Part shown: positions 3,024 to 32,597 of the stretch, piece after piece
Position numbering within the stretch: position 1 is the stretch's first letter
How the letters are laid out: each line of letters starts with the position of its first letter
NCBI RefSeq assembly: GCF_000143415.4
Contig: NW_003314300.1
Span: 1 to 39,719 of the forward strand
DNA from: Selaginella moellendorffii
Taxonomy: Eukaryota; Plantae; Lycopodiophyta
DNA length: 39,719 bases
Reading direction: 5' to 3'
Notes under the pieces: model-generated
Told to the model about the DNA's origin: nothing
What the model saw: only the letters and a program-made list of their open reading frames with translations
Database searches by the model: none
Program-made: the position numbers and the translations under genes

Positions 3024-5057
3024 TATGAGACACAAAATCCCTAAGCCCCAAAGTGGAGCTGAAAGGGTGCCATGTGGTAATGGCTAAAGCGAAAGCCAAA
3101 CAAATGTAACACATTTGGACTAAAAGCTCCGACTTGAAAGGTTGAGAGCGGGAGTGATACTCCCAACGAAGTGCTTGAGGAACAAGTGCAAAGCAAGCAA
3201 TAAGTGAGTCTTTAGAAAAGGGACACAAGAGGAACTGAGATGGAGTCCGAGATGGACCCAAGATGGAGTCCGAGATGGACCAAGATGGACCCAAGATGGA
3301 CCCGAGATGGAGTCTAAGATGGAGTCTGAGATGGACCCGAGATGGAATCCGAAATGGAGTCTTAGATGGAGTCCGAGATGGACTGAAATGGAGTCCAAGA
3401 TGGACCCGAGATGGAGTCTGAGATGGAGTCCGAGATGGACCTGAGATGGAGTCCGAGATGGAGTCCTAGATGGAGTCCGAGATGGACCAAGATGGAGTCC
3501 GAGATGGACCCGAGATGGAATCCGAGATGGAGTCCAAAATGGACCCGAGATGGACCCGAGATGGAGTTCAAGATGGACCCGAGATAGAGTTCGAGATGGA
3601 GTTCTAGATGGAGTCCGAGATGGACCCGAGATGGAATCCGAGATAAAGTCCAAGATGGACCCAAGATGGAGTCCAAGATGGACCCGAGATGGAGTCCGAG
3701 ATGGACCCGAGATGGAGTCCGAGATGGACCCGAGATGGAGTCCAAGATGGACCCGAGATGGAGTCCGAGATGGAGTCCAAGATGGACTCCGAGAAGGATC
3801 CGAGATGGAGTCCGAAGTCGAGACCAAGACCGTGACCAGGACTGAGACTGAGACCGAGGCCGAGGCAGAGCCCGAGTCCGAGTCCGAGCCCGAGCCCGAG
3901 TCCGAGTCTGAGTCCGAGTCCGAGTCCGAGTCCAAGTCTGAGTTTGAGTCCAAGTCTGAGTCCGAGTCCGAGTTCGAGTCTAAGGGGGTGAAAGCCCAAA
4001 GCATTCATCTCCCAAACCCTAGAGGTTTTAGTGAGCTCCAAAAGTATAGTAGGGGGAGGATTCCAGTGGAGTCAGTTTGGCCAGGAAAGGCCAGTTTATC
4101 CCAGAAAGGCTGTACCTAGGTGTTGGGTGATGGGATAACCACTAGGAAGTCCAAAGCTAGAGTGAATACAGACTGACAAGTGGGGTAGCTTGGTGAAGTG
4201 TTCAAGAGCCGACTCTAATTCCCCCGAGAGATCAAATGGTCAATGTTCCCAGTCCAAGTGTGAGTGGCACTACCTACTTGAATACCTGACGTGGCTCAAT
4301 GAAACCTCACTCTAAGCTCATGGCTAGAGCACCCAAAGGTGAAAGGCGGGGAGAGTAACCATGAGGCTCATATAAGGCCACGGTGTTCCGAAATGTTGTC
4401 CCAAAAGCCCAGACTGTGGAAAGGAAGAGGAGTAGTCCTTTGGTGTAGTGACCAAGGATACAATCAGGTGGTAAAGAGGTCCCAAAGGACCATGGGACTT
4501 AGTGGTCGGGCCTGTGGACCTCAATCCAATGGTAGTGTTGGCAAACACGGCCATGGGCAGAAAGGGACTTGGTAGGGACCGGAAAATGGATATTGGGGAA
4601 TGTTATTCCTTATGTTTATGGGCATCTTAAGGATGCAAAGGAGTGAATCTAGGATGATCACTCATGGATGGATGGCCTAGTCTTTGAAAGACGAGATTGC
4701 GATGTAGGTGGTGTCAGACCACCGGTGTGACCAAGGTGAATGGGCATAGCCTTAACATAACGGGCTGATATATCAGTGGTACCTTGGGGTGTCAGTCATG
4801 GGATTGGACACGTGGAGCACTTAGATCAAGCACAATGGTTGAGTGGCACAGATGCCATTTTTGGGGCTAGCAAGTCCCTAAGTCCAAAATAGGACTTACG
4901 GAGGTTGTGAATGATACTCTTCTAAGTGGTCGGAAGTGTGGTTAAATGACTAAAGTAAAATGGAAAATTTAGTCACTTATATATACCTCAAGTTAGTCGG
5001 CCATGCCCAACCTACCCACTATCTCTACTATACATTTTGAACCCCCCATAACCACCA
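3024..5057 (-). mobile_element. ~2-kb 3' LTR of a minus-strand gypsy element
   Basis: Preceded on the minus strand by a polypurine tract at 5059-5074. Ends ...TCTCATA (3024), where homology with 1-707 stops. The start coordinate is approximate. Confidence 0.65.
3238..3980. repeat. Tandem microsatellite inside LTR (GAGATGGAGTCC / GAGATGGACCC units, then GAGTCC hexamers)
   Basis: Directly visible; longer array than in the copy at 36-475. Confidence 0.95.
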
Positions 5058-13418: not shown

Positions 13419-15959
13419 TGACGCTTAACAAGAAACAACACTGGCCCCTTACCGCGACCTCGATCGATCGAGCCCCCACCGGTAGAGTGGAGGAACCCTA
13501 AAAGCACGCCAATCGTCCAATTTAGGGCTCCTAGAGATTGGTCTTTAGTGGCAGCGGCCGAGCTGTGGCTTTGCGGCGAGCCCTACCGCCCACGGCAAGA
13601 ATCTGTGAAGCTGCCCACAGCGAAATCTCGCGCCTCAAATCAGCCCCCTGGAACGCGGAGAATCGGTTCTAGAGGTTGACCAGGCTCTACATTTTCCTAT
13701 TCTTTCCTTTGTTCCAGCTTCTGGACGGAAGAAACAAATCTAGCATTGCTTCTATGCTATAGCTAGGTGAGCGTCCCTCGAAGCTGGGAGAGCAAAATTT
13801 TCACTTGGTACTCCTCTGGAAGCCACTGTCATTCTTCTCTGAGGCTCAAATGGGTGAATACATAGAGTGTTCTTCATTACCCAGGAGGATCTCAAATTCT
13901 TTGCCGCCAGGCAAAGCCGAGAACAAAAAATGGAGTCTCCATTTTTCAAAACTAAGATCCAAGCTATACGATTGCTTGAGTCTATGACAATGTTTGATCC
14001 GTAACTTCCTGCCATAATTAATGAATATTCTTCGAATATTCAATGTCCTAGTTATACCCATTAAAGTTATTGAAGATTAAGTTTAATCCTAAATCAATAA
14101 TTTTTAAAAATAAGTTATATCTCATTTATCTATATGGTTTTAATTTCAAATGGCTAGTTTTAATATTATCTAAATTTTTATAGGAATTAAATAATTTTTA
14201 AAATAAATTTAAATAAAAAGGAACAATAAGGTAATATATATATTATTTAACACTTAAGTTGAATTTACAACTATTGGAAATATTCTTCTCAATTAAAATA
14301 TATATTGTATCTAAATCTTATGGAAATTTGAAATTAGTTAGTATATAAATTTTGTATTAAATAAAAAATTATAACTACAAAAATAATATAAAATTTATAA
14401 TTTATGAAAAATATCTATATTCTTAAAAAAAATTTAAAAGTTGTAAATTGCTTTGAAGTACTTCAAACAATGTTAAAACATTTATAAAAACTTAAAGTTT
14501 TCCATAAGTTACACTCTAACAGTTAAGGCTTTTGCCCTAAGTAACACATAAGTAGTCGATATCTATGGTTTAAAGGATATATTAGCAATTAATGAAGAAA
14601 TTTATATTTTTTGTAAAATATAGTTATTATATTTTTAATTAATTATAAGAGATTTCTTGCATAATAGCATGGTATATTGAATTTTCATGCTCAATGATAT
14701 TTTAATACCATTAAAGGAAACTATTAAATAAATTTAAATAACTTTTGTATTTATAAGTTACAAAAATATTTTAATTTAAATAAATTTCTCATGTCTCAAA
14801 GGCTTTAGATATAGAATATAGATTTTAGGGCTAGGGTTGCGCTTCATGGCATAAATATACTATTTAGCTTAATTTATTTTCAGTTATTTTAAAGGTATTC
14901 ATGAAGGTAGCTCTAACTATAAAACTAAATTTTATTCAACAAATTTAAATTAACTATTATAAAGTTAAACTTATCTATGTAATTATTTCACAATACAAAA
15001 TTTACACCACTGTGAATGTTAGTAACAATTCTTACATCGAGAGATGAAACTCTAGTTACCCCTTTTTTTATTCTTAAAATATTAAATTAAAATTTATATT
15101 CTTTTCTTTTAAAGTTATTATACAAGAGTAGTGAGCAAATTTGATTGATAAAATATACTTATGAATAAAAATGAATGTATATTTGTAAGTGCTTGGAACA
15201 CTTGTCCCTCACATATTATATTTATATATTTGAATTTAAAATAAAAAATAAAAAAATTTAGTTTTAATTTTCTTCTGAAATTTTCATCCTTGTACTTAAC
15301 TTAATAAAATTTTAATACTTCTAATAACATTGAAATCTATTTGAACAGACTCAATATAAATGGCTTTAGATGTTACATTGTTAACCACACTCCTTCCAAG
15401 ATATCCATTAATAATATGCTGATCACATGGAGTTTTCTGAAAGACAGTCCAATTATAGGAACTTCCTGTGTAACCAAAGTTATAATCCTATATCAAACAC
15501 TTCACTGAGACAATCACTTGTAATGAAAACCTTTCTTATGGATCATTTGGAGTAATAATTGTGGGTATGGCTACATCAATCACTTTAAGTCAATGTAAAG
15601 ATTATTACTTACCTTTGATATATAACTCCAACTTCTAGTCCACAACTTTAATACTAGCATCTTCAGGCATAATTTTGCCATTAAGATGTTAGCGTTGTTG
15701 ATCTAGATAACATTCAAGCTATAAAACAGCATTATAGTTTTAGATCCATGATTCAAACTATTGAACAACCATTAACCTTAAATATTGCAAACTCAAGATA
15801 CTTATGTGGCAAAGGAAAGCCAAAGTGAGTCTTAAATGGCGTAGTGATGCCACTTTTTGAAAAATAACAAATTTCCTTTCCACACTTTTGGAGCATGATA
15901 CGTTTTTCAACATTCAATGAGCACATTGGTGGTAGTGGCCGTAAGAGCCATCTTCACAG

Positions 15960-17905
15960 CAATGTGGAAACACAGAGACAGAGAGGGAGAGCCTCTTCAG
16001 AAAGAACAACTACTTTGTCGTACAGAAGTTTTTTCTTGAGCACCTCCACTCGGGTATAGGCTTTGGGATCGATACCCGCATTTACTGCCAGAGCATTGGC
16101 CTCTTAGCGTCTCAACTTCTTGAACCGGCTGCTCGTCAACTGGATGATGCTCCCTTCAGCTGGTGGAACCACGGGGTCAGGCATCCCAGATACAGTGCTA
16201 TAGCACCACTCTCGAGCAGCAGCCATCTTTTGCATTACCGTGCGTACGTCAACATGCACCCTGCCTTCTAGTGCAGCTTCGAAAGAAAGCACATACCGTG
16301 TATGCTCCAAAACACCAACATGGCTTCCATCTCGCAGTGACCTGAGAGATCCTTCTGAACTTCAGGCGCCCTCGCGGTTGTACAAACAAAAACATAATCC
16401 AGCTGCACAAGCGTATTCCGTGTTGCTTCCAGGACACCACCCCCATACCACTTCTCCAGCTCCCGAATGCTCATGAACTCTGATTCTGAGTGGAGATGCC
16501 TTTCGACGTTGGTTGTGTAATGGAGACCAATTATATGCAGCTGGCCACAAGTGTCCATGAAGAAAATGACTGCATCTACGCTCTGATAATTGTCATATCG
16601 TTAACTCTGTTGCGTTCTTAAGCTTGCCAATCTTCACAGCTGGAATAGTAGAGAACGGAATGGAACGAAGCTGAGTGATGAAGTATCAGGCAGGATCAAT
16701 CACCAGTCCCTTTCGAGAAATGACGTCGTTACAGAATCGTTCACACAACCACCCAGCTTCACTCCAATCCAGAAGTGGACTGTGGACTACTGCGCTCGCA
16801 TAAGCCACCCAAGGGTCATGATCATCACCAGCATGCTTGTTTCGAAACTCCTCCACGTAAATTTGCTGAATGAAGGGCGTACAGAACATTCACTTTTCGA
16901 CATACGCATACCTAGGATCCACATTTATAATCTGCGCATCGGTGCTGAAATCTCCTTTAGCTTTCATTGACGTCCTTATAGAACGGAAGAGGCTGCTATC
17001 AACGAAAGAGGAGATGACTGAATCCCAGTCTTCAGAGCTGTCTAACAGGTCACTGACTTCCTCGGGCTTCAAGTCGAACATCGGAGCCTCGGACCAAAAT
17101 CCATCCGCCTCTACTTTCACCCGTTCCCGTCCAACCCGTTTCTTAGAGGCAATTTCGATGCAGGTCTTATCCAAGATATCCAGAGAGTGTGGGTGCTTGG
17201 CTGCGTAATACTCCACATCGCGTTGCCTATCTTGGTCATCACCAACCACAGCACCTAGAACTGAGGCATGCTGCATAAACGTCTGCAGCTGTTCCTGCAA
17301 GACAGTCCACATAAGCATAAACATGAAAGTAAGAACGATCGCATACCTTGGTGAATCCTTCTGAATGAAAGGTTGTCGCTTTTTCATCGAAGGTTCTTTC
17401 CACTTCCGTGAAGTGCCAGGCATCGGGTGAGAGTCCAAAAATCACTTTGTAGCTCTCAACAATGTCCTTCAACGACTCCTCCGCTTTAAAACGCTTCTTG
17501 CGATCTGGTTTCTTTAATACATCCAAAGCCGGGGCACCATCGACAATAAAAGTGAAGTCATCCCCCAAGGACGTTCGCTTCTTCAGAAAAGCCTTCAGCG
17601 AAAGACCTCAGCTGTGACGTCGGGTTGCTCTGCATACGAAAACTTGAGCTCATCAACAAACCAATGAACGAGGCAAGCGCTGGCTAGTTCCATGTTCCAG
17701 ATACACACCACTTTTCTAGTAGAAACGGAGCACATAAGTGAGGTCAATGCCCTGAGCTTGCAAGACTTCCCGTCGCCCTTGGGACTGACCAGCAGGAATT
17801 CCTGACTAGGACGCATATCAAGAATCCACCTCCGAGCTAGATCTTTCAAGTCCGGCAAGCCCCACCACATTAATTCCTCTGCCTGGCCCAAAGTGCCTAG
17901 GTAAT
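15960..17905 (-). pseudogene. Crinkler/RHS-like P-loop NTPase + PD-(D/E)xK restriction-endonuclease-fold gene, disabled
   Basis: Walker A-like LLVSPKGDGKS (SPKGDGKS at 17763-17786), Walker B-like FTFIVD, GWLCERF helix, NYQSVDAVIFF...LHIIGLHYT nuclease-like motif (~16515-16595), Cys-rich tail GQCSGSKCG. One probable intron; several stops and frameshifts. Confidence 0.6.
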
Positions 17906-18169: not shown

Positions 18170-19070
18170 AAACTAATATATGATTTTGTCAATGAAAAGT
18201 TTGCCATCTTAGTCTCGACGGGGAACTTGGAAAAGCAGCAAGAAGGAAATAAGACGCAGTAGTGGAGACAAATTTTTCAATGAATTTGATCTCTTTCCCA
18301 AGACAAAGTCTGCCAACCACGTATATAAAACACCCAATCGAAAATGAAATGAAACACACACTTCTCTTCTAAAGATCGTCAAGATCCAACTATTTATTTG
18401 GATATTTGTCCTTTTCAGTGGCAGTGAAGCCGATAGCCATGGCGCGTGGTGATGCATGAGTTCAATAATATATATTATATAAACTGTGAAAAAAACTAAA
18501 GATGTTGCCTTTACTCATCTGGATTCACTCGTGTGTTGTTCTATGTCCCAGCATTATAGAAAAGAAAAGGAATTGACAAACTCGGAACGATTTCCTCGAC
18601 TAACTTTCAAAGGACAAAGTGATGCGGCCCCAAGAGACGCCACAGCATTGTATGCTGCCTCCAGCTACAAATACGAGTGGCCTCACAGATCAAATCACTT
18701 CTCTCGAATATACTCGTTGAACTTTTAGTTTTAGCAGCAAATCATGGAGAACCAAGGCTTGCTTGGTGTTGTTTTCGGTGCTTGCCATCTTTGTGCTGAT
18801 GCTGGCCATGAGAGTGGACGTGGGAGCAATCGCACCGCGAGGATGGCGCTAGTATGGCGGCAGCTGCCACTGTCACTATAAAGCTAGCTCCTCTCTGTGA
18901 TCGTAAGTTTCCTCTCGGCAATTTTGAGTGAGGGAACACACTATGACCAACAAATCCAATTGCCCATGTACGCTTATTCGCCATCGACAAATCAAAGCTC
19001 TATCTTGTCAGTCGAGAGAGTTTACTGTATTCCAGGAAAACGCCGGTAAAAGCAAAGGAAATGATCGATG
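18170..19070 (+). repeat. Segmental repeat unit (promoter + peptide pseudogene + spacer); direct copy at ~25830-26722, partial copy at ~22300-22730
   Basis: Long near-identical stretches, e.g. TTGCCATCTTAGTCTCGACG... through ...GGTAAAAGCAAAGGAAATGATCGATG. Confidence 0.9.
18744..18885 (+). pseudogene. Cys/Trp-rich peptide pseudogene
   Basis: ATGGAGAACCAAGG has a 1-bp insertion relative to the intact copies. Corrected frame reads ACLVLFSVLAIFVLMLAMRVDVGAIAPRGWR*YGGSCH (TGG>TAG). Confidence 0.85.
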
Positions 19071-20753
19071 AGAGGAATCACTACCACGCAGACGTACCGA
19101 TTGAAGCCTCTAGAACAGGCCGTAGACGATCTAGAGCGGCGGGCATCGTCGCTCGACGACGACGACTACGCGCAACTCCTCACAGCTTGCATCCAGGAAA
19201 GAGATTTGCCTCAAGGCGCCAGGCTCCACGCGCTCATCCTTGGCAGCAGCCACCACCAATCCAACAGGTACCTCGCAAATCTTCTCATCCAGCTCTATGG
19301 AAGGTGCTAGCGCGCGGATCGAGCATGGCAGGTGTTTATCAGCATCCACGAGCCCAACAGATTCTCCTGGAACTTGATGCTTGGCGCTTATGCCCAGAAT
19401 GGATATCTCGAGGAAGCAAAAGAGCTGTTTGACCAGATGCCACAAAGGGATATTGTTGCATGGGTCACTGTTGTCACGGTTCATGCAAACCATGGAAACG
19501 CGGATGAATGCCAAGCATTGTTTGATCAGGTTCTAGAATAGGATGTCGTTTGCTGGAACTCGCTACTTACAGCATATGCCCATAACGGGCATATGGATCA
19601 ACACAACATAGTTTCTTGGACTCTTATGGTTACTGGGTATGCAAGAAAAGGCCTTGTTAACGACGCACTAAATGTGTTTATGAGAATCCCCGAAACCAAC
19701 GAACTAGGATGGACTGTTCTTGTCATTGCATATGCCCAGCTTGGGCATATTGAAACAGCCAAGGAGCTTCTTAGTCTCGTGGAATGCAATGCTAGCGGCA
19801 ACGGCCAGCCTGCAAGAAGCAAGGTCTCTGTTTGATGCCATGCCACAGAGGAACGTTGCCAGCTCGAAGAAGCTCGCATTCTCTTCGATCGAGCTCCCTA
19901 TCACGACGACGTGGTGTGGACTGCCATGATCTTGGCCTACCCAACCACGGCCACCTCGAAGAAGCCATGAAGATGTTTGCACGGATGTCACAGCGCGATC
20001 TCGTCGCTTGGACGGCAATGGTGGCAGCATTTGCTTTGCACGGGAGCTTGATCGATGCCAGAGCCTTGTTCGACCAAATGCCACAGCACGATAGCGTCGC
20101 GTGGAACACGATGCTGGGAGCTTACATCCAGAGCAATTGCCTCGTCCAAGCGCGGGAGCTCTTCGTGGCCATGCCGGTGAGAGACACAGCGAGCTGGAAC
20201 GCGATCCTTGCCTCGAGCGCTCAAAGGGAATGTCTTGCAGGCCGGGAAGATCTTCTCCACATTGCCTGATCGGAGCATTGTGTCGTGGAACGCGATGATC
20301 TATGGCTGCGCACAGAATGGCCATGAGCGAAAAGCTGCTGAGTTTTTTGGCAGCATGGCGATGGAGGGCGAGGCGAGAAACGAGATAAGTTTCCAGGCGA
20401 TTCTCCTGACTTGCAATCACGGTGGGAAGCTCCGTGTGGTACTCGACTACTTTCGATCTATGGTGGCCGAGTACAGCATTTCTCCAAATGTGATTCATTT
20501 CCAGGCGATGGCAGATGTGCTGGGACGAGCCGGGTTGGTTGCCGAGGCTGAAGGTCTGCTGCTGATGATGCCCTTCCAGCCGCATTTCCTCGCGTGGAAA
20601 AGCTTGATCAGCGCTTGCAAAGTTCATGGTAACGGTACGAACATCGATGTTGCAGCTCGTGCCGCAGAGAAACTCTTGGAGATGAAACCAGGGGACTCGG
20701 CGCTCTACGTGCTCATGTCAAATCTGCAAAAGCAGCTGCGTCAACCTTTATAA
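19068..20753 (+). pseudogene. PLS-class PPR (short-motif array + E domain) pseudogene, copy 1
   Basis: YAQLLTAC, NLLIQLYGRC*, SWNLMLGAYAQNG, repeated FDQMPQRD..W motifs, DVLGRAG..MPFQP..W.SLISACKVHG..YVLMSNL; split by stops and frameshifts. Confidence 0.9.
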
Positions 20754-21513
20754 TAACTTCAAAGATTTTGTCTCAAAAGTGATAATGATTATGCAAACTT
20801 TTGGAAGGATAAATTTAAATAGTATACCAAGATGCATTTTTTTATTGGTATATTTAAAAGGAAACCTCTTGAACACAGATGTTTCCTCAACTGAACTCCC
20901 CAGGATACAATGCTAGAGTGGCATCACTTTATCCTTTGAAAGTTAGTCAAGGAAATCGTAGCAACACACTAAATCAAAGTACAGACAACATTTTTTGTTT
21001 TTTCACGGTTTATAATATACATTATTGCTGAATTCATGCATCACCATACGCCACGGCTATTGACTTCACTGCCACCAAAAAGAACAGAAATCCGTGTTTT
21101 ATATACATGGTGTATGTACTTGCTAGACTTTGTCTTAGGAAAGAGATCAGATTGTTGAAAATTTTGTCTCCACTTGTCATATTTCCATCTTGTTGCTTTT
21201 CCAAGTTCACTTTCATTGACAAGAATATATATTAGTTTATTTAATATTATATGATATAAAGCTGAACGCTTGACACCCTTGGATAGATTGACTCGAGATT
21301 TCTTAGTTGGCTTTCTTTTCTTTCTTTTTTTTTCATGTTCTAAATTTTCTTGTCATTCTGGTTATTGCGAACGTTCAACAACTTTCCAGAAAACACATTG
21401 ATAGAATTTCAAACACGTATATAGAGATCACAAAAGACTCATAGGACTCTAAAACATTTTCGTATTCTATGTATCTCATCCACGCTGTCAACCCAGCAAG
21501 CTTTGGCGATTCT

Positions 21514-21645
21514 TCAGCGGAGGCAGCGGCTGCTCTTCCCCTCGCTGGCATCGATGGCATCTGTTGTCATACCCGTACCAATTGCATTGCATGCAGCGAA
21601 ATCCATTCCAGTACCATCCTCCTCGACCTCCACTCCCACTGCTAG
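21514..21645 (-). pseudogene. Decayed three-repeat paralog of the Cys/Trp peptide
   Basis: One frame reads RGGWYWNGFRCMQCNWYGYDNRCHRCQRG. Upstream GTGGGAGTGGAGGTCGAGGAGG resembles the MGVDVGG-coding segment but is out of frame. Confidence 0.7.
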
Positions 21646-21968
21646 GTGTGCCTGGGCCTGGTTGTGATGCTCCAATCGGAGTCTTGTTGCTTGCCGATCA
21701 TTGGAGCAATCGATCAATCTAGCGATGGATTGATTGAAAGTTGAGGGATTTGGAGAAGAGAGGAGAAGGAGCAAGAGAGATTCAGACATTTTATATCAAG
21801 GCCTGGACAATTTATATATTATTGCTAGAACTCATCCAGCATCGCACGATACAGAAAGCACGTTATCAGTGTCTTTATTCTTGTTTCCAGACCCTTGGCA
21901 CTGCAGAATGATGAAATCAATTCCGATGTTGATTCTTAACTTGGGCTTACCCCGTGAAACGAGAGGTT

Positions 21969-22166
21969 TCAGTTGCGCCAGCAGCGATTGTTGCGCCAGC
22001 TCCAACCCCTCTGGCAACGGTGGCAACTATTGTCGTACCAATACCACCCCGACTGGCAGCGCTGGGCAGCAGCCTTTGCGATTCCTCCCACGTCCACGCC
22101 CATGGCCAGCATCATCACAAACATGGCGAGCGCCAAAAACAACACGAATAAAGCCTTGTTCTCCAT
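21969..22166 (-). CDS. Small secreted Cys/Trp/Arg-rich repeat peptide precursor, intact copy A (65 aa)
   Basis: MENKALFVLFLALAMFVMMLAMGVDVGGIAKAAA-QRCQSGWYWYDNSCHRCQRGWSWRNNRCWRN: hydrophobic signal peptide, TATA box upstream, near-identical second copy. Confidence 0.85.
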   Translation of the reverse strand: MENKALFVLFLALAMFVMMLAMGVDVGGIAKAAAQRCQSGWYWYDNSCHRCQRGWSWRNNRCWRN

Positions 22167-22229
22167 GATTTGCTGACAAACTAAGAGAAGAGAGAAGTAG
22201 TTTCATCTGTGCGGCAGAAGGGGCTCATA

Positions 22230-22235
22230 TTTATA
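22230..22235 (-). promoter_or_regulatory. TATA box of peptide gene A
   Basis: CTATAAATAT on the minus strand ~65 nt upstream of the ATG; conserved in the paralogous copies. Confidence 0.55.
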
Positions 22236-22258
22236 GTTCGAGGCAGCTACAGAGGTCA

Positions 22259-22329
22259 AGTTCCGTGTTTGGGAATTTCTTCTTTTTTCTATAATGTCGA
22301 AAAAAGAAGAAATTCCCAAACACGGAACT
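22259..22329. repeat. Perfect 31-bp inverted repeat with 9-nt loop
   Basis: AGTTCCGTGTTTGGGAATTTCTTCTTTTTTC-TATAATGTC-GAAAAAAGAAGAAATTCCCAAACACGGAACT. Confidence 0.97.
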
Positions 22330-22409
22330 CAAAGAGATAAGGACTAACTGATGCCATCCCTTCCTGCCTCATAGATTAAACCACCTCTCTCGAATATAAC
22401 AAGCTTACT

Positions 22410-22495
22410 AGCAGCAAAAAGGTGGTTGTTTTCGGTGCTCGTCACGTTTGGACGTGGAGGAATCGCACCTCGAGGATGGCGCTGGTATGGATCGT
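22410..22495 (+). pseudogene. Deleted remnant of the Cys/Trp peptide gene
   Basis: GTTGTTTTCGGTGCTCG..TGGACGTGGAGGAATCGCACCTCGAGGATGGCGCTGGTATGG matches the 18744/26371 copies; the ATG is lost. Confidence 0.7.
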
Positions 22496-22839
22496 AGGTT
22501 TCGATTATTTAGCAATTTTGAACGTATAATTCAAACCATGATAAATATGACGAACAAGTTGAGGGAACTGTGACCACCGTTTCCTTTTTACAGCAGAAAT
22601 CCAATTGCCCCATATGAAATCCCGCCTTTGGAAACGCTTATTCGCCATTGACAAATCAAAGCTCTATTTTGTCAGTCGAGAGAGTTTACTGTATTCCAGG
22701 AAAACGCCGGTAAAAAGCAAAGGAAATAATCAGAGATGACGTGGCATGTAATTATGTCCACGTGGCAGTTGTTCCATCCATATACAGTTGAAATACATAG
22801 AAAGTTCTTCCTCCTCGTGCGTGTCTCTTCGCTGCTAAC

Positions 22840-24495
22840 AATTGAAGCCTCTAGAACAGGCCGTGGACGATCTAGATCGGCGTGCATTGTCGCTCGACGA
22901 CGACTACGCGCCTTGACGCAAGAGATTTGCGTCAAGGCGCCAGGCTCCACGCGCTCATCCTTCACCACCAATCCAACAGGTACCTCGCAAATCTTCTCAT
23001 CCAGCTCTAAGGAAGGTGCGAGCGCGCGGATCGAGCATGGCAGGTGTTTATCAGCCATCCATGAGCCCAACAGATTCTCCTGGAACTTGATGCTTGGCGC
23101 TTATGCCCAAAATGCGGATCTTGAGGAAGCAAAAGAGCTGTTTTAAGAGATATTGTTGCATGGGTCTCTATTCTCACGGCTCATGCAAACCGTGGAAACT
23201 TGGAGGAGCGCCAAGCATTGTTTGATCAGGTTTCAGAATGGGATGTAGTTTGCTAGAACTCGATACTTACAGCATATGCACATAACGGGCATATGGATCA
23301 AGCAAGCCAGATCTTTGATGGAATGCTAGAACACAACATAGTTTCTTGGACTGTTATGGTTAATGGGTATTCCAGAAAAGATCTGTTAACGATGCGCTAA
23401 ATTTGTTCATGAGAATCCCCGAAACCAACGAGCTGGGATGGACTATTCTTGTTACTGCATATGCCCAGCTTGGGCATATTGAAACAGCCAAGGAGCTTTT
23501 CAGTAAAATGCCACACCGCTGACTTAATATCGTGGGACGCAATGCTAGCGGCAACGTCCAGCCTGCAAGAAGCAGGTCTCTGTTTGATGCCATGCCACAG
23601 AGGAACGTTGCATCGTGGTCGACAATGGTCACAGCACTGGCCGAGAGAAACCAGCTCGAAGAAGCTTGCATTCTCTTCGATCGAGCTCCCCATCACGACG
23701 ACATGGTGTAGACTGCCATGATCTTGGCCTACTCCAACCACGGCCACCTCGAAGAAGCTATGAAGATGTTTGCACGGATGCCACAGCGCGATCTCGTCGC
23801 TTGGACGGCAACGGTGGTGGCAATTGCTTTGCACGGGAGTTTGATCGATGCCAGAGCCTTGTTCGACCAAATGCCACAGCACGCTAGCGTCGCGTGGAAC
23901 ACGATGCTGGGAGCTTTACATCCAGAGCAATTGCCTCGTCCAAGCGCGGGAGCTCTTCGTGGCCATGCTGGTGAGAGACACAGCGAGCTGGAACACGATC
24001 CTTGCCGCGAGCGCTGAAGGGGGGAATGTCTTGCAGGCCGGGAAGATCTTCTCCACATTGCCTGAACGGAGCATTGTGTTGTGGACGCGATGTTTTTTGG
24101 CAGCATGGCGATGGAGGGCAAGACGAGAAACGAGATAAGTTTCCAGGGGATTTTCCTGACTTGCAATCACGGTGGGAAGCTCCGTGTGGCACTCGACTAC
24201 TTTCGATCTATGGTGGCCGAGTACAGCATTTCTCCAAATGTGATTCACTTCCAGGCGATGGCAGATGTGCTGGGACGAGCCGGGCTGGTTGCCAAGACCG
24301 AAGGTCTGCTGCTGGTGATGCCCTTCCAGCCGCATTTCCTCGCGTGGAAGAGCTTGATCAGCGCTTCCAAAGTTCATGGTAGTGGCAAGAACATCGATGT
24401 TGCAGCTCGTGCCGCAGAGAAACTCTTGGAGATGAAACCAGGGGACTCTGGAGCTCTACGTGCTTATGTCGAATCTGCAAAAGCAGCTGCGTCAC
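22840..24495 (+). pseudogene. PLS-class PPR pseudogene, copy 2 (direct duplicate of 19100-20745)
   Basis: Colinear high nucleotide similarity to copy 1, with both shared and private indels/stops. Confidence 0.9.
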
Positions 24496-25032
24496 ATGAG
24501 TCCATTTGGCCGCTTAACATTAAAGAGTCAACAAGTATAACTTTAACAACATTTAATTAATAGAATAACAGAAAATAATTATAAGTAAATTAAATAAGAA
24601 AAACAATTTTAATGAATAAATCTTGATAATTATTGATATCACTTTCATTAATCGTTGCAGATTGCTCTAGAATGCCCAAGAGATTGTCAGACAATGTATT
24701 TACCACTTTGATTAAAGTTGCGGGAGACTTGACGTACTGAGTCTGTGGTCGAGATGGAAGACAGGGTATTAGGTTCGTGTTTAGTATATTAGCATCGAAG
24801 TTCTATGGAACTTTGAATCAAACACTTGTAAAGTTTTGGCAAAGCTAGTAGAGGAATGCTAGAGTGACTTTGGAGATAAGAATTTGAAGGGTTGGAGAAG
24901 CATAGGAAAAGGCAAACACGGAACCACTTTTACTGGACTAGCTCTCAAATATTCTTTCAGAGATAAGAAATAAGCGAAGCCGTCCCAAGACAACTCTCCA
25001 GCGTCCATCTAACATTTTGTGCTGCCTCGAGC

Positions 25033-25038
25033 TATAAA
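25033..25038 (+). promoter_or_regulatory. TATA box of peptide gene B
   Basis: CTATAAAGA ~85 nt upstream of ATG 25120, homologous to the site at 22230. Confidence 0.5.
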
Positions 25039-25119
25039 GACGAGCCCCTCCTGCCTCACAGATCAAACCATTTCTCTCTAATATACAAGCCTACTTGATC
25101 TTAGTCTGAGCAGCAAATC

Positions 25120-25317
25120 ATGGAGAACAAGGCTTTCTTGGTGATGTTTTTGGCGCTTGCCATGTTTGTGATGATGCTGGCCATGGGCGTGGACGTGGGA
25201 GGAATCGCAAAGGCTGCTGCCCAGCGCTGCCAGTCGGGGTGGTATTGGTATGACAACAGTTGCCACCGTTGCCAGAGGGGTTGGGTCTGGCGCAACAATC
25301 GCTGCTGGCGCAACTGA
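25120..25317 (+). CDS. Small secreted Cys/Trp/Arg-rich repeat peptide precursor, intact copy B (65 aa)
   Basis: MENKAFLVMFLALAMFVMMLAMGVDVGGIAKAAA-QRCQSGWYWYDNSCHRCQRGWVWRNNRCWRN; 8 substitutions and no indels versus copy A. Confidence 0.85.
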   Translation: MENKAFLVMFLALAMFVMMLAMGVDVGGIAKAAAQRCQSGWYWYDNSCHRCQRGWVWRNNRCWRN

Positions 25318-25609
25318 AGCCTCCCGTTTCACGGGGTAAGCCCATGTTAAGAATCAACATCGTAATTGCCTTTGATTTCATCATTCTGCAGTGCCAAGAA
25401 AGAATAAAGAGCACTGATAACGTGTTTTCTGATCGTGATGAGTTCCAGCAATAATAAATAAATTGTCCAGCTTGATATAAAAAGTCTGAATGTCTCTTGC
25501 TCCTCCTCTCTTCTCCAAATCCCTCGACTTCCAATCAATGCATCGCTGGATTGATCGATTGCTCGACTCGATTGGAGCGTCACAACCAGGCCCAGGCACA
25601 CGTAGCTCA

Positions 25610-25727
25610 CCAAGGCGATGGCGCAGCGCTGCCAATGGATTTCGCTGCGTGCTATGCAATTGGTACGGGTATGACCAGTTGCCATCGATGCCAGCGAGGG
25701 TGGCGCTCGAATGGCAGCCGCTACTGA
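25610..25727 (+). pseudogene. Decayed multi-repeat paralog of the Cys/Trp peptide
   Basis: NGFRCVLCNWYGYD, a frameshift, then SCHRCQRGWRSNGSRY*. Confidence 0.7.
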
Positions 25728-26370
25728 AGAATCGCCAAAGTTCGCTAGCCTGGCGCCTCGAAGAACCACGGGAGCGCAGTTTGAAATTTTCAAGCTTTTG
25801 GACTAAATTTTATTATTATATAATATTAAATAAACTAATATATGTTTTTGTCAATGAAATGTTGCCATCTTAGTCTCGACGTGGAACTTGGAAAAGCAAC
25901 AAGAAGGAAATAAGATGCAGTAGTGGAGACAAAATTTTCAACGAATCTGATCGCTTTCCCAAGACAAAGTCTAGCAATTACATACACCAACCACGTCCCC
26001 TCTCTCGATCGAAAGTGAAATGAAACACTTCTAAAGATCGTGAAGATCCAGCAATTTATTTGGATGTTTGTCCTTTTCAGTGGCAGTGAAGTCTATAGCA
26101 ATGGCGCGTGGTGATGCATGAGTTCAATAATATATATTATATAAACTGTGCCTTTACTCATATGGATTCATGTTGTTCTATGTCCCAGCATTATAAAAAG
26201 GAAAAGGAATTGACAAACACGGAACGATTTCCTCGACTAACTTTCAAAGGACAAAGTGATGCCGCCCTAAGAGACGTTACAGCATTGTATGCTGACTCCA
26301 GCTATAAAGACGAGCGGCCTCACACTTCTCTCGAATATACTCGTTGAACTCTTAGTTTTAGCAGCAAATC

Positions 26371-26506
26371 ATGGAGAACCAAGGCTTGCTTGGTGTTGTT
26401 TTCGGTGCTTGCCATGTTTGTGCTGATGCTGGCCATGAGAGTGGCCGTGGGAGGAATTGCACCTCGAGGATGGCGCTAGGATGGCGGCAGCTGCCACCGT
26501 AACTAG
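26371..26506 (+). pseudogene. Cys/Trp-rich peptide pseudogene
   Basis: Same 1-bp insertion and same TAG stop as the 18744 copy; ...GGIAPRGWR*DGGSCHR. Confidence 0.85.
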
Positions 26507-26724
26507 AAAGCTAGCTCCTCTCTGTGATCGTAAGTTTCCTCTCGGCAATTTTGAATGTATAATTCAACTATGAAGAACAAGTTGAGGGAACACACTATGA
26601 CCAACAAATCCAATTGCCCATGTACGCTTATTCGCCATTGACAAATCAAAGCTCTATCTTGTCCGTCAAGAGAGTTTACTGTATTCCAGGAAAATGCCGG
26701 TAAAAGCAAAGGAAATGATCGATG

Positions 26725-30140: not shown

Positions 30141-30294
30141 CGATTGCTTCCAATCCGTTCGTAGTGGTTACTGAGGGCTTTTGCAAAGCATCGATGCTTT
30201 GGAGTGGGCGCGTTTGCAAGAGCCACAGTAGCTTAGCTTGGAATAAAAAGAGCGGGCTTATTTGAAATGCTCTTACTCTTAGGTCTAATCGAGA

Positions 30295-32597
30295 ATGCGG
30301 GCGATTCATTCGATCGCGGTGGCTGGAGCTCCTGGAGATCGCGGCGGGCACCGGCAATCTCCTGGCCATGGCGCTGCCACTGGCGCCGGCGCTGGATCAT
30401 CGAGGTAAGAATTCTCGCTCCAGTTTCAGGGTTTCAATCGCGTTTCTTTCGCAGGTGGAGAACTCCCAAGAACAAGAGCGGCTCTAATGCTGGAATTCCG
30501 TCGATCTACGACGCGTTGCAGCAGGCGGGAGCGATTCCGGGCGTTGGTGTCGTGCTTGCGGCATTGACAGCGTGTAGAAACTCGCGAGACCTCCAAACAG
30601 GTAAGCGAGTCCATAGCTACGTTGCCGAGCGAACGAATTACTGTTCTTCAAACAGCGTGGTGGCGAACTCTGTGCTGGATATGTACGCAAAGTGTGGAAG
30701 CATGGAGGACGCGTTGCAAGCTTTCTCTGAGATGAAGCATCGGGACGTCGTTTCGTGGACTTCCATGATCTCCGGATATGCAAGGTGTGGAGATGGCGCT
30801 CTGGCTCTCAAGTTCTTCTTGCGCATGCAAGAAGAAGGCTGTGAGCCGGATCGTGTCACGGTCATCGCAGCAGTGAAGGCATGCTCTAGCTGCGCAGAGA
30901 AGGAAGAAGTTCGCGTGATACTAGGAAGAGCAGTGAAGATCAAATCGCTGGAACAGGGAAGAGCTCTTCATTCTCGAGTCGCCAGAGCAGGATTTGTCCG
31001 GGACCTTGCTGTGGCAAACTCGCTGGTGGATATGTACTCCAAGTGTGGGAGCATGGAAGATGCACAAAAGGTGTTCGAGAGCATGAGGCAGCGGGACGTG
31101 ATTTCATGGACTTCGATAATTTCGGGTTATGCACAGGCTGGGGAAGCGGAGTTTGCTCTCGAGCTTTACTCGCGAATGCAAGACGAAGGCTGCGCTCCAG
31201 ATCGTGTGACTCTCCTCGCTGCGCTCAAGGCTTGTGCTAGCTTGGCCGAAGGAGAGAAAGATGGTCCCTCGAGACAAAAGTGGCTGGAGCAGGGGAGGGC
31301 TATTCATTCCAAGGCCGTGGCAAGTGGAAACCAGTCGGATCACTTCGTGGCAAACTCTCTACTCGACTTCTACGCAAAGTGTGGGAGCATGGAAGACGCT
31401 TATACTGTGTTTCAAGCTATGTGTCGTCACAGCTCAATCTCGTGGAAGTGCATGATCCTGGGATATGTCCACAACGGGGAGTCCGAGCAAGCTCTCGAGT
31501 TTTACAAGCGCATGCAATCAACAGGGTGTGTGGCGGATCGTGTGACTTTACTGGCAACTTTGAAAGCTTGCTCTACCTTGACGGCGGCAGGGGCATCAGA
31601 AGAAGCACTGGGAACTGCTGAGAAAGAAAGGCTCGTAAAGTTCAGGCTCAAGTGTCTCGAAACAGGAGCACGCATCCATTCTCAAGCTGGAACGCTGGAC
31701 CTTGCAGTAGCAAACTCTCTAATCGATCTCTACGCGAAGTGCGGTCGCATCATACTTGCTCGCAATCTCTTCGAAAGCCTTCCACATAAGAACACCGTCT
31801 CATGGAACTGTATCATCATCGGGTATGCGGAGTGTGGGGAAGGCGCCGTGTCTTTGGAACTCTACAGACAGATGCGTCACGCCTCAGGCTGTGCTCCAGA
31901 TGCCGGTAGTTTCGTGGCCGTTTTAAAAGCTTGCTCCAGCTTGGTGGCACTGGAATTCGGGAGGCAAATCCAGATGGAAGCTCGCAGTTTTGGACTAGAG
32001 AGAGATCCCATCGTCGCAAACGCGCTCGTTAGTTTCTTCGCGAAGTGTGGGAGCATGGCCGAGGCCGAGGAGGTATTTAGTTCCATTTCGAAGAAAGATT
32101 TAGTGACATGGAGCTCATTGATCGCAGGCTATAGCTGCCGAGGCGACGCAACTCGGGTGCTGGACCTCTTCGAGAGAATGGAGAAAGTTGGCGGTGTGAA
32201 GCCAGACGGTGTTACGCTCCTCTCCGTCCTCACTGCCTGTAGCCACGCCGGCCTGGTCGACAGAGCGAAGGACGAATTCAGAGCAATGCCCCGCAAGCAT
32301 GGGATTGCTCCCACGATTCAACACTACACTTGCATGGTGGAGCTTCTCGGCCGCGCGAATCAACTCGACGAGGCAGTGAAATTGGTGAAAGGGATGAGCT
32401 GCAAGCCGGATGTTGTGATATGGAAGGCAGTGCTGGGAGCTTGCTGGAAGTGGAAGAACGTGGCGCTCGGGAGGCTTGCTTTCGCGTCCATCATGGAGCT
32501 CGACAATCAAAATGCCCCGGCTTACGTGCTCATGGCCAATCTTTATGCTGAGGCTGGGATGCTGGAAGAAGCCGCAAGGATGCGCCGAAGAAGTTAA
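30295..32597 (+). CDS. PLS-class PPR protein with E domain (no DYW), probable organellar RNA-editing specificity factor; likely one 5' intron at 30405-30454
   Basis: Uninterrupted ORF with repeated ANSLVDMYSKCGSMEDA / DVVSWTSMISGYA / PDRVT..A.KAC triplets and a C-terminal E region (ELLGRANQLDEA..W.AVLGAC..YVLMANLY). ATG 30295 (MRAIHS) joins in frame via GTAAGA..CGCAG. Confidence 0.93.

Follow-up and report, generated by a model that had tools for sequence, protein, structure and literature searches.

We analyzed a 39,719-nt stretch of the Selaginella moellendorffii genome (NCBI RefSeq assembly GCF_000143415.4, contig NW_003314300.1, positions 1 to 39,719 of the forward strand; hereafter, the window) that carries a cluster of sequences for small peptides rich in Cys, Trp, and Arg. 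Two of its open reading frames (ORFs), copy 1 on the reverse strand and copy 2 on the forward strand (Table 1), are real, strongly transcribed genes. With a probability of roughly 60%, we regard them as two active paralogs from a family of small, secreted, Cys-rich peptides restricted to one lineage (Selaginella-type lycophytes); the peptides would be of the defense or wall-binding type and not enzymes. The family appears to be essentially unannotated and missing from gene annotation, and two features stand out as unusual: the very high expression of an unannotated gene and a motif match across domains of life.

Transcription was assessed with contigs from four public runs (X1, X2, and X3 among them) placed on positions 22250–26700. 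Over 25081–25378, at copy 2, the summed depth reached 6e5 in X1, 3e3 in X2, and 1e3 in X3, and it was near 0 upstream of ~25060. In X1, it was ~6.4e5 at 25081–25229 and ~6.1e5 at 25230–25378, compared with 723 in the bin ending at 25080 and 0 at both 25826–26123 and 22250–22547; X2 and X3 had the same profile at lower levels. Across the adjoining pentatricopeptide repeat (PPR) pseudogene, the X1 depth was 30–220, with much of the signal coming from paralogous transcripts with many differing letters. The peptide gene exceeded this PPR background ~6000-fold in X1, ~750-fold in X2, and ~10-fold in X3. A joint skipping 25336–25391 was found in X1 (3 contigs, depth 6822) and X2 (depth 413), which places a short intron in the 3' untranslated region (3'UTR), 18 nt after the stop codon. 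The splice joint, together with the gap of four to five orders of magnitude in depth between gene and flanks, indicates that the material is RNA. One X2 contig starts to match at 25067, ~30 nt past the TATA box. At the other end, the depth fell ~10-fold after 25378 and ~300-fold after 25527, indicating that the AATAAA signals at 25403–25462 mark the approximate end of most transcripts. The ATG of the ORF is the first in the transcript and has A at −3 and G at +4. Rfam and tRNA scans of the window gave no match.

Copy 1 is expressed as well. In X1 and X2, about half of the depth at 25258, 25285, and 25286 carried copy-1 letters, and nine X1 contigs joined copy-1-specific exon-1 letters to exon 2 (with a loose end at 25391), from which we conclude that both paralogs are transcribed and spliced. 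A first-pass annotation, made from the window sequence alone, had proposed the peptide family and had made the proposal depend on transcripts from at least one copy; both were strongly transcribed. Eighteen runs from several studies contained 0.58–0.92 of the exon's words. About a fifth of these words also occurred in two polyA RNA-Seq runs labeled 'fungus metagenome' (X35 and X36), and they may derive from a related plant transcript in a plant–fungus sample.

Translation confirmed both 65-aa ORFs as intact. The two copies are 94% identical. They differ at 8 nt, which results in 3 silent changes and 4 amino acid replacements, of which S56V affects the mature part and the other 3 affect the leader. 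Residue counting agreed with the composition given in the first-pass annotation for the 31-aa tail, namely 4 Cys, 5 Trp, 6 Arg, and 1 Asp (computed net charge ~+5, isoelectric point 9.7, mass 4.09–4.11 kDa), and the two 14-aa C-x2-G-W-x-W-x4-C-x-R repeats per tail that it had described were seen in both ORFs. The pattern C-x2-G-W-x-W-x4-C occurs exactly 4 times in the six-frame translation of the window, twice per gene; nucleotide-shuffled windows gave a mean of 0.2 matches for the full and half-module patterns together. Both peptides have the Cys framework C-x10-C-x2-C-x10-C, end 3 residues past the last Cys, and bear no membrane anchor. Each gene also has the TATA box given in that annotation, which can be read directly from the sequence.

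The leader has the layout of a signal peptide: an n-region (MENK), an h-region at residues 5–22 (Kyte–Doolittle hydropathy above 2.4), and then candidate sites under the −3/−1 rule after G23, G28, A30, A32, and A34. The hydrophobic core ends at M22, and AMG/VD, which also fits the −3/−1 rule, lies nearer to it than AAA/Q. The latter site, after A34, would permit an N-terminal pyroglutamate and is 12 residues from the core; a cut there would more likely be a second, propeptide-type step. From this layout, we infer both the secretion of the peptide and its processing site.

The proposal that each tail forms two tandem β-hairpins agrees with structure prediction, as AlphaFold gives two hairpins with or without an alignment. 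With a 15-row alignment, AlphaFold2 modeled residues 31–65 at a mean predicted local distance difference test score (pLDDT) of 76.7, with strands W41–Y44, S47–R50, W55–R58, and R61–R64 and two-residue turns (D-N and N-N). A single-sequence run on a 42-residue form reproduced these strands at pLDDT 76.3, with the linker helical, indicating that the hairpins were not imposed by the microbial rows of the alignment. The mature domain in the AlphaFold2 models consists of four strands without helix, and from the strand register we infer that one face of each module displays its Cys, its Arg, and both Trp. The disulfides probably lie inside the modules (C37–C48 and C51–C62), an arrangement favored by the fact that isolated archaeal-like modules, discussed below, have exactly two Cys.

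We then placed the peptides among known sequences. A Pfam scan of both peptides, read up to E = 1, listed DUF4215 alone (10.9 bits, cut-off 27), NCBIfam had nothing at threshold, and a PDB sequence profile search gave 0 matches at E up to 10. Exact look-up in a collection of 15 billion proteins found neither peptide, a word-indexed homolog search with the 65-aa peptide over proteins of 36–114 aa gave no candidates, and a literature search did not find a description of the motif or family. Thus, the strong match to a described family that would have spoken against a new one did not appear in the Pfam, NCBIfam, PDB, fold, or literature searches. HMMER against 1.84e9 representative proteins returned six matches (P0001–P0006), only one of which is from a plant (P0002); P0001 and P0004 were set aside as apparent matches to low-complexity repeats.

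P0002 (XP_024531936.1, 353 aa) is annotated in S. moellendorffii as 'putative pectinesterase 11'. Its first 52 residues align with the leader, linker, and first module of the window peptides at 57–59% identity over 46–47 residues (tblastn 3e-11; HMMER 5.7e-8 over the 1.84e9 proteins). Like the window peptides, P0002 has a hydrophobic leader, a GVDVGGIA-x-AAAQ linker, and a first module, here C-x2-GW-x-W-x4-C-x2-C; unlike them, it has one module with three Cys, followed by a poly-Asp linker and a pectinesterase catalytic domain. The features that define the family (leader, GVDVGGIA-x-AAAQ linker, and C-x2-G-W-x-W-x4-C modules) are present in the window peptides and P0002, whose N-terminus is, as judged from the alignment, a true family homolog.

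The first-pass annotation had held the Cys spacing to be foreign to defensins, thionins, snakins, heveins, LTPs, RALFs, and α-hairpinins, and the Pfam scan and the Cys framework support this view. The defensin, thionin, snakin, LTP, and hevein families have frameworks of 6–12 Cys, and RALFs have their own motifs; the window peptides, with 4 Cys spaced x10, x2, x10 and no Pfam match, belong to none of defensins, thionins, snakin/GASA, LTPs, RALFs, or heveins. Closer in kind are the Ib-AMPs of Impatiens balsamina, which are Trp/Arg/Gly-rich 20-mers with an N-terminal Gln and a CC-x8-C-x3-C framework, cut from a polyprotein, and the α-hairpinins, which carry C-x3-C...C-x3-C on a helical hairpin. 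Both resemble the window peptides in plant origin, 4 Cys, two disulfides (predicted for the window peptides), and a very basic character. However, α-hairpinin membership fails on the C-x10-C-x2-C-x10-C framework and the predicted all-β fold, and Ib-AMP membership fails on the single 31-aa domain after one leader and on the spacing. NCD3G of class C G protein-coupled receptors, TNFR cysteine-rich domains, and furin-like repeats share with the peptides only a generic architecture of stacked disulfide hairpins. They belong to large receptors, and their Cys frameworks differ; membership in these groups also fails (Foldseek E ≥ 2.5, VIA Z ≤ 2.6, no Pfam match). We class the peptides as a new family within the plant secreted cysteine-rich peptides.

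It may not be the only one. An S. moellendorffii expressed sequence tag (EST) study from 2005 reports five 'novel' transcripts among its most abundant ESTs; the top one, the only one whose motif is given, encodes a different Cys-rich repeat, x3-G-x2-TCDKCAQTGVCTCGKN (PMC1184070). Selaginella may hold several abundant undescribed Cys-rich peptide families.

As to function, an apoplastic defense or glycan-binding role is most likely, judging from the sequence features and expression. We prefer it because of the leader, the small size, the two probable disulfides, the charge of about +5, the Trp/Arg face, the high and sample-dependent expression, and the birth-and-death cluster in which the genes lie. 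Each gene, with its TATA promoter, single coding exon, and short 3'UTR intron, is transcribed at very high, sample-dependent levels. Under this proposal, its 65-aa product has a cleavable hydrophobic leader, a conserved Gly/Ala linker, and a 31-aa cationic domain of two 14-aa modules. Each module would form a hairpin with a two-residue turn (W-x-W-x, D/N-N, x-C-x-R), stapled by its within-module disulfide. After secretion, the stapled hairpins would expose a flat Trp/Arg surface, and in the apoplast this surface would attach to the envelopes of microbes or to polysaccharides of the wall. A parallel is offered by the β-hairpin antimicrobial peptides tachyplesin, protegrin, gomesin, arenicin, and thanatin, which are of animal origin and consist of one hairpin, usually with two cross-strand disulfides. 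The window peptides are likewise short, cationic, and Arg/aromatic-rich, with disulfide-stapled hairpins (the staple being predicted in our case), and by analogy it is plausible that they work on microbial envelopes in the same manner. They differ in having tandem hairpins with one predicted staple each, which starts from a Cys four residues before the first strand, and there is no sequence relationship.

Several points weigh against this proposal. The run labels are 'RNA?' guesses only, and the depths, as sums over contigs, are a poor gauge of expression. The peptide is known here from its sequence and transcripts, and its activity is deduced from these. The pLDDT is only moderate (~76), and the disulfide geometry is a prediction. 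Matches in the shape searches (Foldseek PDB, VIA wide, and ESM-Atlas) were all non-significant and to generic Cys-rich hairpins: the best superposition, on the mGluR cysteine-rich domain (TM score by query 0.6–0.68, root-mean-square deviation 1.4–1.9 Å, 31–35 residues), came with Foldseek E-values of at least 2.7, and the Atlas feature search was uninformative (best score 0.76). Finally, the pectinesterase fusion of the sole annotated relative speaks for a wall-related role at least as strongly as for an antimicrobial one.

This last point leads to a possible, though improbable, alternative, in which the free peptides bind the plant's own wall (pectin or cellulose) and coat or cross-link its polymers, for example de-esterified homogalacturonan through Arg, and microbes are not targeted. 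P0002 would fit this well, carrying leader, linker, and one module ahead of its poly-Asp stretch and enzyme domain, and the high abundance of the transcripts fits a structural role. Flat aromatic faces on tiny disulfide-stabilized sheets are typical of carbohydrate-binding modules (CBMs) such as CBM1 and hevein. The window peptides resemble CBM1, hevein/CBM18, and CBM14 in size (~30–45 residues) and, by prediction, in being small disulfide-stabilized sheets that expose aromatics, but the Cys frameworks of CBM1, hevein, and CBM14 are different and the window peptides match no Pfam family at threshold. CBM14 echoes were weak: a Z of 2.0 in the VIA fold search and, for the HMMER match P0005, a Pfam CBM_14 E-value of 0.0096, below the cut-off. 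Moreover, P0002 may be a fused gene model, that is, an annotation fusion; its pectinesterase domain (Pfam PF01095, 3.8e-59) matches in two stretches, the best of which covers profile positions 99–297, and a search of the window for pectinesterase sequence found none.

An endogenous signaling ligand, that is, a phytocytokine or developmental cue for a receptor kinase of the RALF, EPF, or LURE type, is unlikely. Small, secreted, disulfide-rich products of a lineage-specific expanded family are what such a ligand would look like, and the excess of peptide transcripts over the PPR background is strongly sample-dependent. However, transcript abundance this high is more in keeping with stoichiometric or defense proteins than with ligands, the window contains no receptor-like partner gene, and the Pfam scan matched no known ligand family.

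The cross-domain match concerns the origin of the module as well as its function. P0003, P0005, and P0006 carry E-E-C-x3-G-[WF]-Y-W-Y-D/N-x-x-C-H, and P0005, P0007, and P0008 (83–85 aa) each combine a pair of tandem modules, linked by C-H-R-C, with a C-terminal membrane helix. Over 32 residues, P0005 shares 50% identity with the mature domain of the plant peptide (pairwise BLASTP 8e-13; HMMER 4e-5 database-wide). The exact decapeptide of plant module 1 (GWYWYDNxCH core) was found in 4 metagenome contigs, where it sits just before the C-terminal anchor of proteins of ~1000–1900 aa (one contig is truncated at 371 aa). These host proteins, from uncultured organisms, are encoded at low GC (35–38%), are rich in N-glycosylation sequons, and look archaeal. 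The contig that encodes P0008 (84 aa, two modules, anchored) carries small genes packed closely on one strand and looks viral, since one of these genes has a strong PHROG match (phrog_9224, 2.7e-24). No Pfam or NCBIfam model covers the C-x3-GWYWYDNxCH module, the exact motif had 0 matches in 185,579 GTDB species genomes, and scans of IMG/VR and GTDB genomes turned up no relative of the module protein that could be confirmed. Among the metagenome/Logan contigs bearing this mini-module (L001–L006), some giant surface proteins also bear long F-N-F-S-N-type repeat arrays.

The microbial module shares with the plant peptide the core decapeptide of module 1, the tandem pair joined by C-H-R-C, and the extracellular setting. 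In contrast, its spacing is C-x3-G rather than C-x2-G, its flanks are acidic rather than Arg-rich, leader and linker have no counterpart, and it adjoins the C-terminal anchor of a large extracellular protein, whereas the plant peptides have no anchor. The match is significant by E-value but short (≤32 aa), dominated by rare residues, and devoid of flank homology; both homology (transfer included) and convergence on the same hairpin are possible, and the sequences do not separate them. It is doubtful that the Trp/Cys hairpin is a cross-domain mini-domain, that is, an archaeal or virus-like module that was transferred horizontally into the Selaginella lineage, gained a plant leader and promoter, and expanded as a minimal glycan-binding unit, with one gene joined to a pectinesterase.

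The least probable explanation, to which we give very little weight, is that the abundant transcripts come from a young, decaying, or non-coding locus whose ORF is untranslated or non-functional: 5 of the 7 copies in the window are dead, the cluster lies among PPR pseudogenes, and the product is known from sequence and transcripts, but both 65-codon frames are intact with a single mature-domain change, P0002 conserves the leader and linker, the start codon stands in the context given above, and no Rfam family was matched.

The peptide genes and their relics form a birth-and-death cluster (Table 1). At least five decayed paralogs had been noted nearby, and five were found. The copies at 18744 and 26371 share three lesions and were thus duplicated after inactivation. 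Two relics of modules lie ~300–350 nt downstream of their respective intact genes; the EEQPLPP tail of the one behind copy 1 weakly resembles the TELPP linker of P0002, and over the one behind copy 2, contigs span 25443–25742 at ~0.3% of the main depth, representing rare read-through or paralogous transcripts. The intact genes themselves sit on the arms of an inverted repeat, around which a wider inverted homology extends (21495–22247 vs. 25746–25021, 81%). A unit of dead peptide copy plus PPR pseudogene occurs three times (18.2–20.7 kb, 22.4–24.5 kb, and from 25.8 kb on); as a dead peptide copy precedes each PPR copy, the two duplicate as one unit. Low-depth RNA contigs with many differing letters over the PPR pseudogenes at 19100–20743 and 22841–24494 (both on the forward strand and each preceded by a dead peptide copy) probably come from paralogs. 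Weak tblastn matches at 20609 and 24359 sit in the E-motif region of PPR pseudogenes and were not counted as family members. A 71-nt near-perfect palindrome (93%) lies at 22259–22329, ~25 nt upstream of the copy-1 TATA box; at the matching position, copy 2 has only one arm-like stretch.

Table 1. Features of the peptide gene cluster in the window
Feature	Position	Strand	Description	Basis
Pseudogene	18744–18870	+	+1 nt frameshift after codon 3, 21-nt deletion removing the first Cys, in-frame TAG	
PPR pseudogene	19100–20743	+	Internal stops, fragmented ORFs	Partner 22841–24494, 84% identity
Open-frame relic downstream of copy 1	21497–21640	-	Without start codon and leader; module-like segments, EEQPLPP tail	
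3'UTR intron, copy 1	21901–21950	-	50 nt, GT..AG	Placed by homology
Inverted-repeat left arm	21918–22175	.	Carries copy 1; 258 nt	95%, partner 25111–25368
Coding sequence, copy 1	21969–22166	-	65-aa prepeptide, Ser at residue 56	Translation
TATA box, copy 1 (TATAAATA)	22228–22235	-	Promoter aligns with copy-2 promoter	Sequence
Pseudogene fragment	22396–22488	+	Lacks the start and some of the leader; lies head-to-head with copy 1	
TATA box, copy 2 (TATAAA)	25033–25038	+	RNA contigs start near 25067, ~30 nt downstream	Sequence
Exon 1, copy 2	25067–25335 (start approximate)	+	~53 nt 5'UTR, coding sequence, 18 nt 3'UTR	Contig depth
Inverted-repeat right arm	25111–25368	.	Carries copy 2	Partner 21918–22175
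Coding sequence, copy 2	25120–25317	+	65-aa prepeptide: leader 1–23, linker VDVGGIAKAAA, Cys/Trp/Arg modules 37–50 and 51–64	Translation
3'UTR intron, copy 2	25336–25391	+	56 nt, GT..AG	Spliced joint 25334/25391 (cut +1)
Exon 2, copy 2 (3'UTR)	25392–25470 (end approximate)	+	AATAAA signals at 25403–25408 and 25453–25462	
Frameshifted module relic downstream of copy 2	25600–25725	+	No leader	
Pseudogene	26371–26500	+	Lesions as in 18744–18870	Repeat match 95%

Elsewhere in the window, an intact intronless PLS-class PPR gene (776 aa; 30267–32597, forward strand) has a terminal E motif (Pfam PPR_2 4e-78, E_motif 6.5e-9). The database proteins closest to it are S. moellendorffii PPR proteins at only 43–47% identity, other matches being from Diphasiastrum, mosses, and ferns, which points to a Selaginella-type lycophyte and to a stretch outside the annotated S. 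moellendorffii gene set or in an unannotated part of that genome. Exact look-up did not find the PPR protein in the collection of 15 billion proteins. A low-complexity tandem-repeat block at 3120–4119 yields ORFs rich in Ser/Asp or Glu/Ser/Pro on both strands and probably does not represent a gene. The block at 14001–16000 is very AT-rich (GC 0.25, window mean ~0.42).

Little is known of defense and wall biology in lycophytes, the sister lineage of all other vascular plants. The family described here is apparently absent from annotation and the searchable literature despite a transcript depth far above that of its flanks and of the PPR background, and because it is unannotated, peptide surveys of non-flowering plants would overlook it. 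Its link to a pectinesterase model raises a question of function, and its link to an archaeal surface motif raises one of origin. At 31 aa and with two predicted disulfides, the mature peptide is within reach of chemical synthesis, and a tandem Trp/Arg hairpin scaffold would constitute a new framework for peptide engineering.

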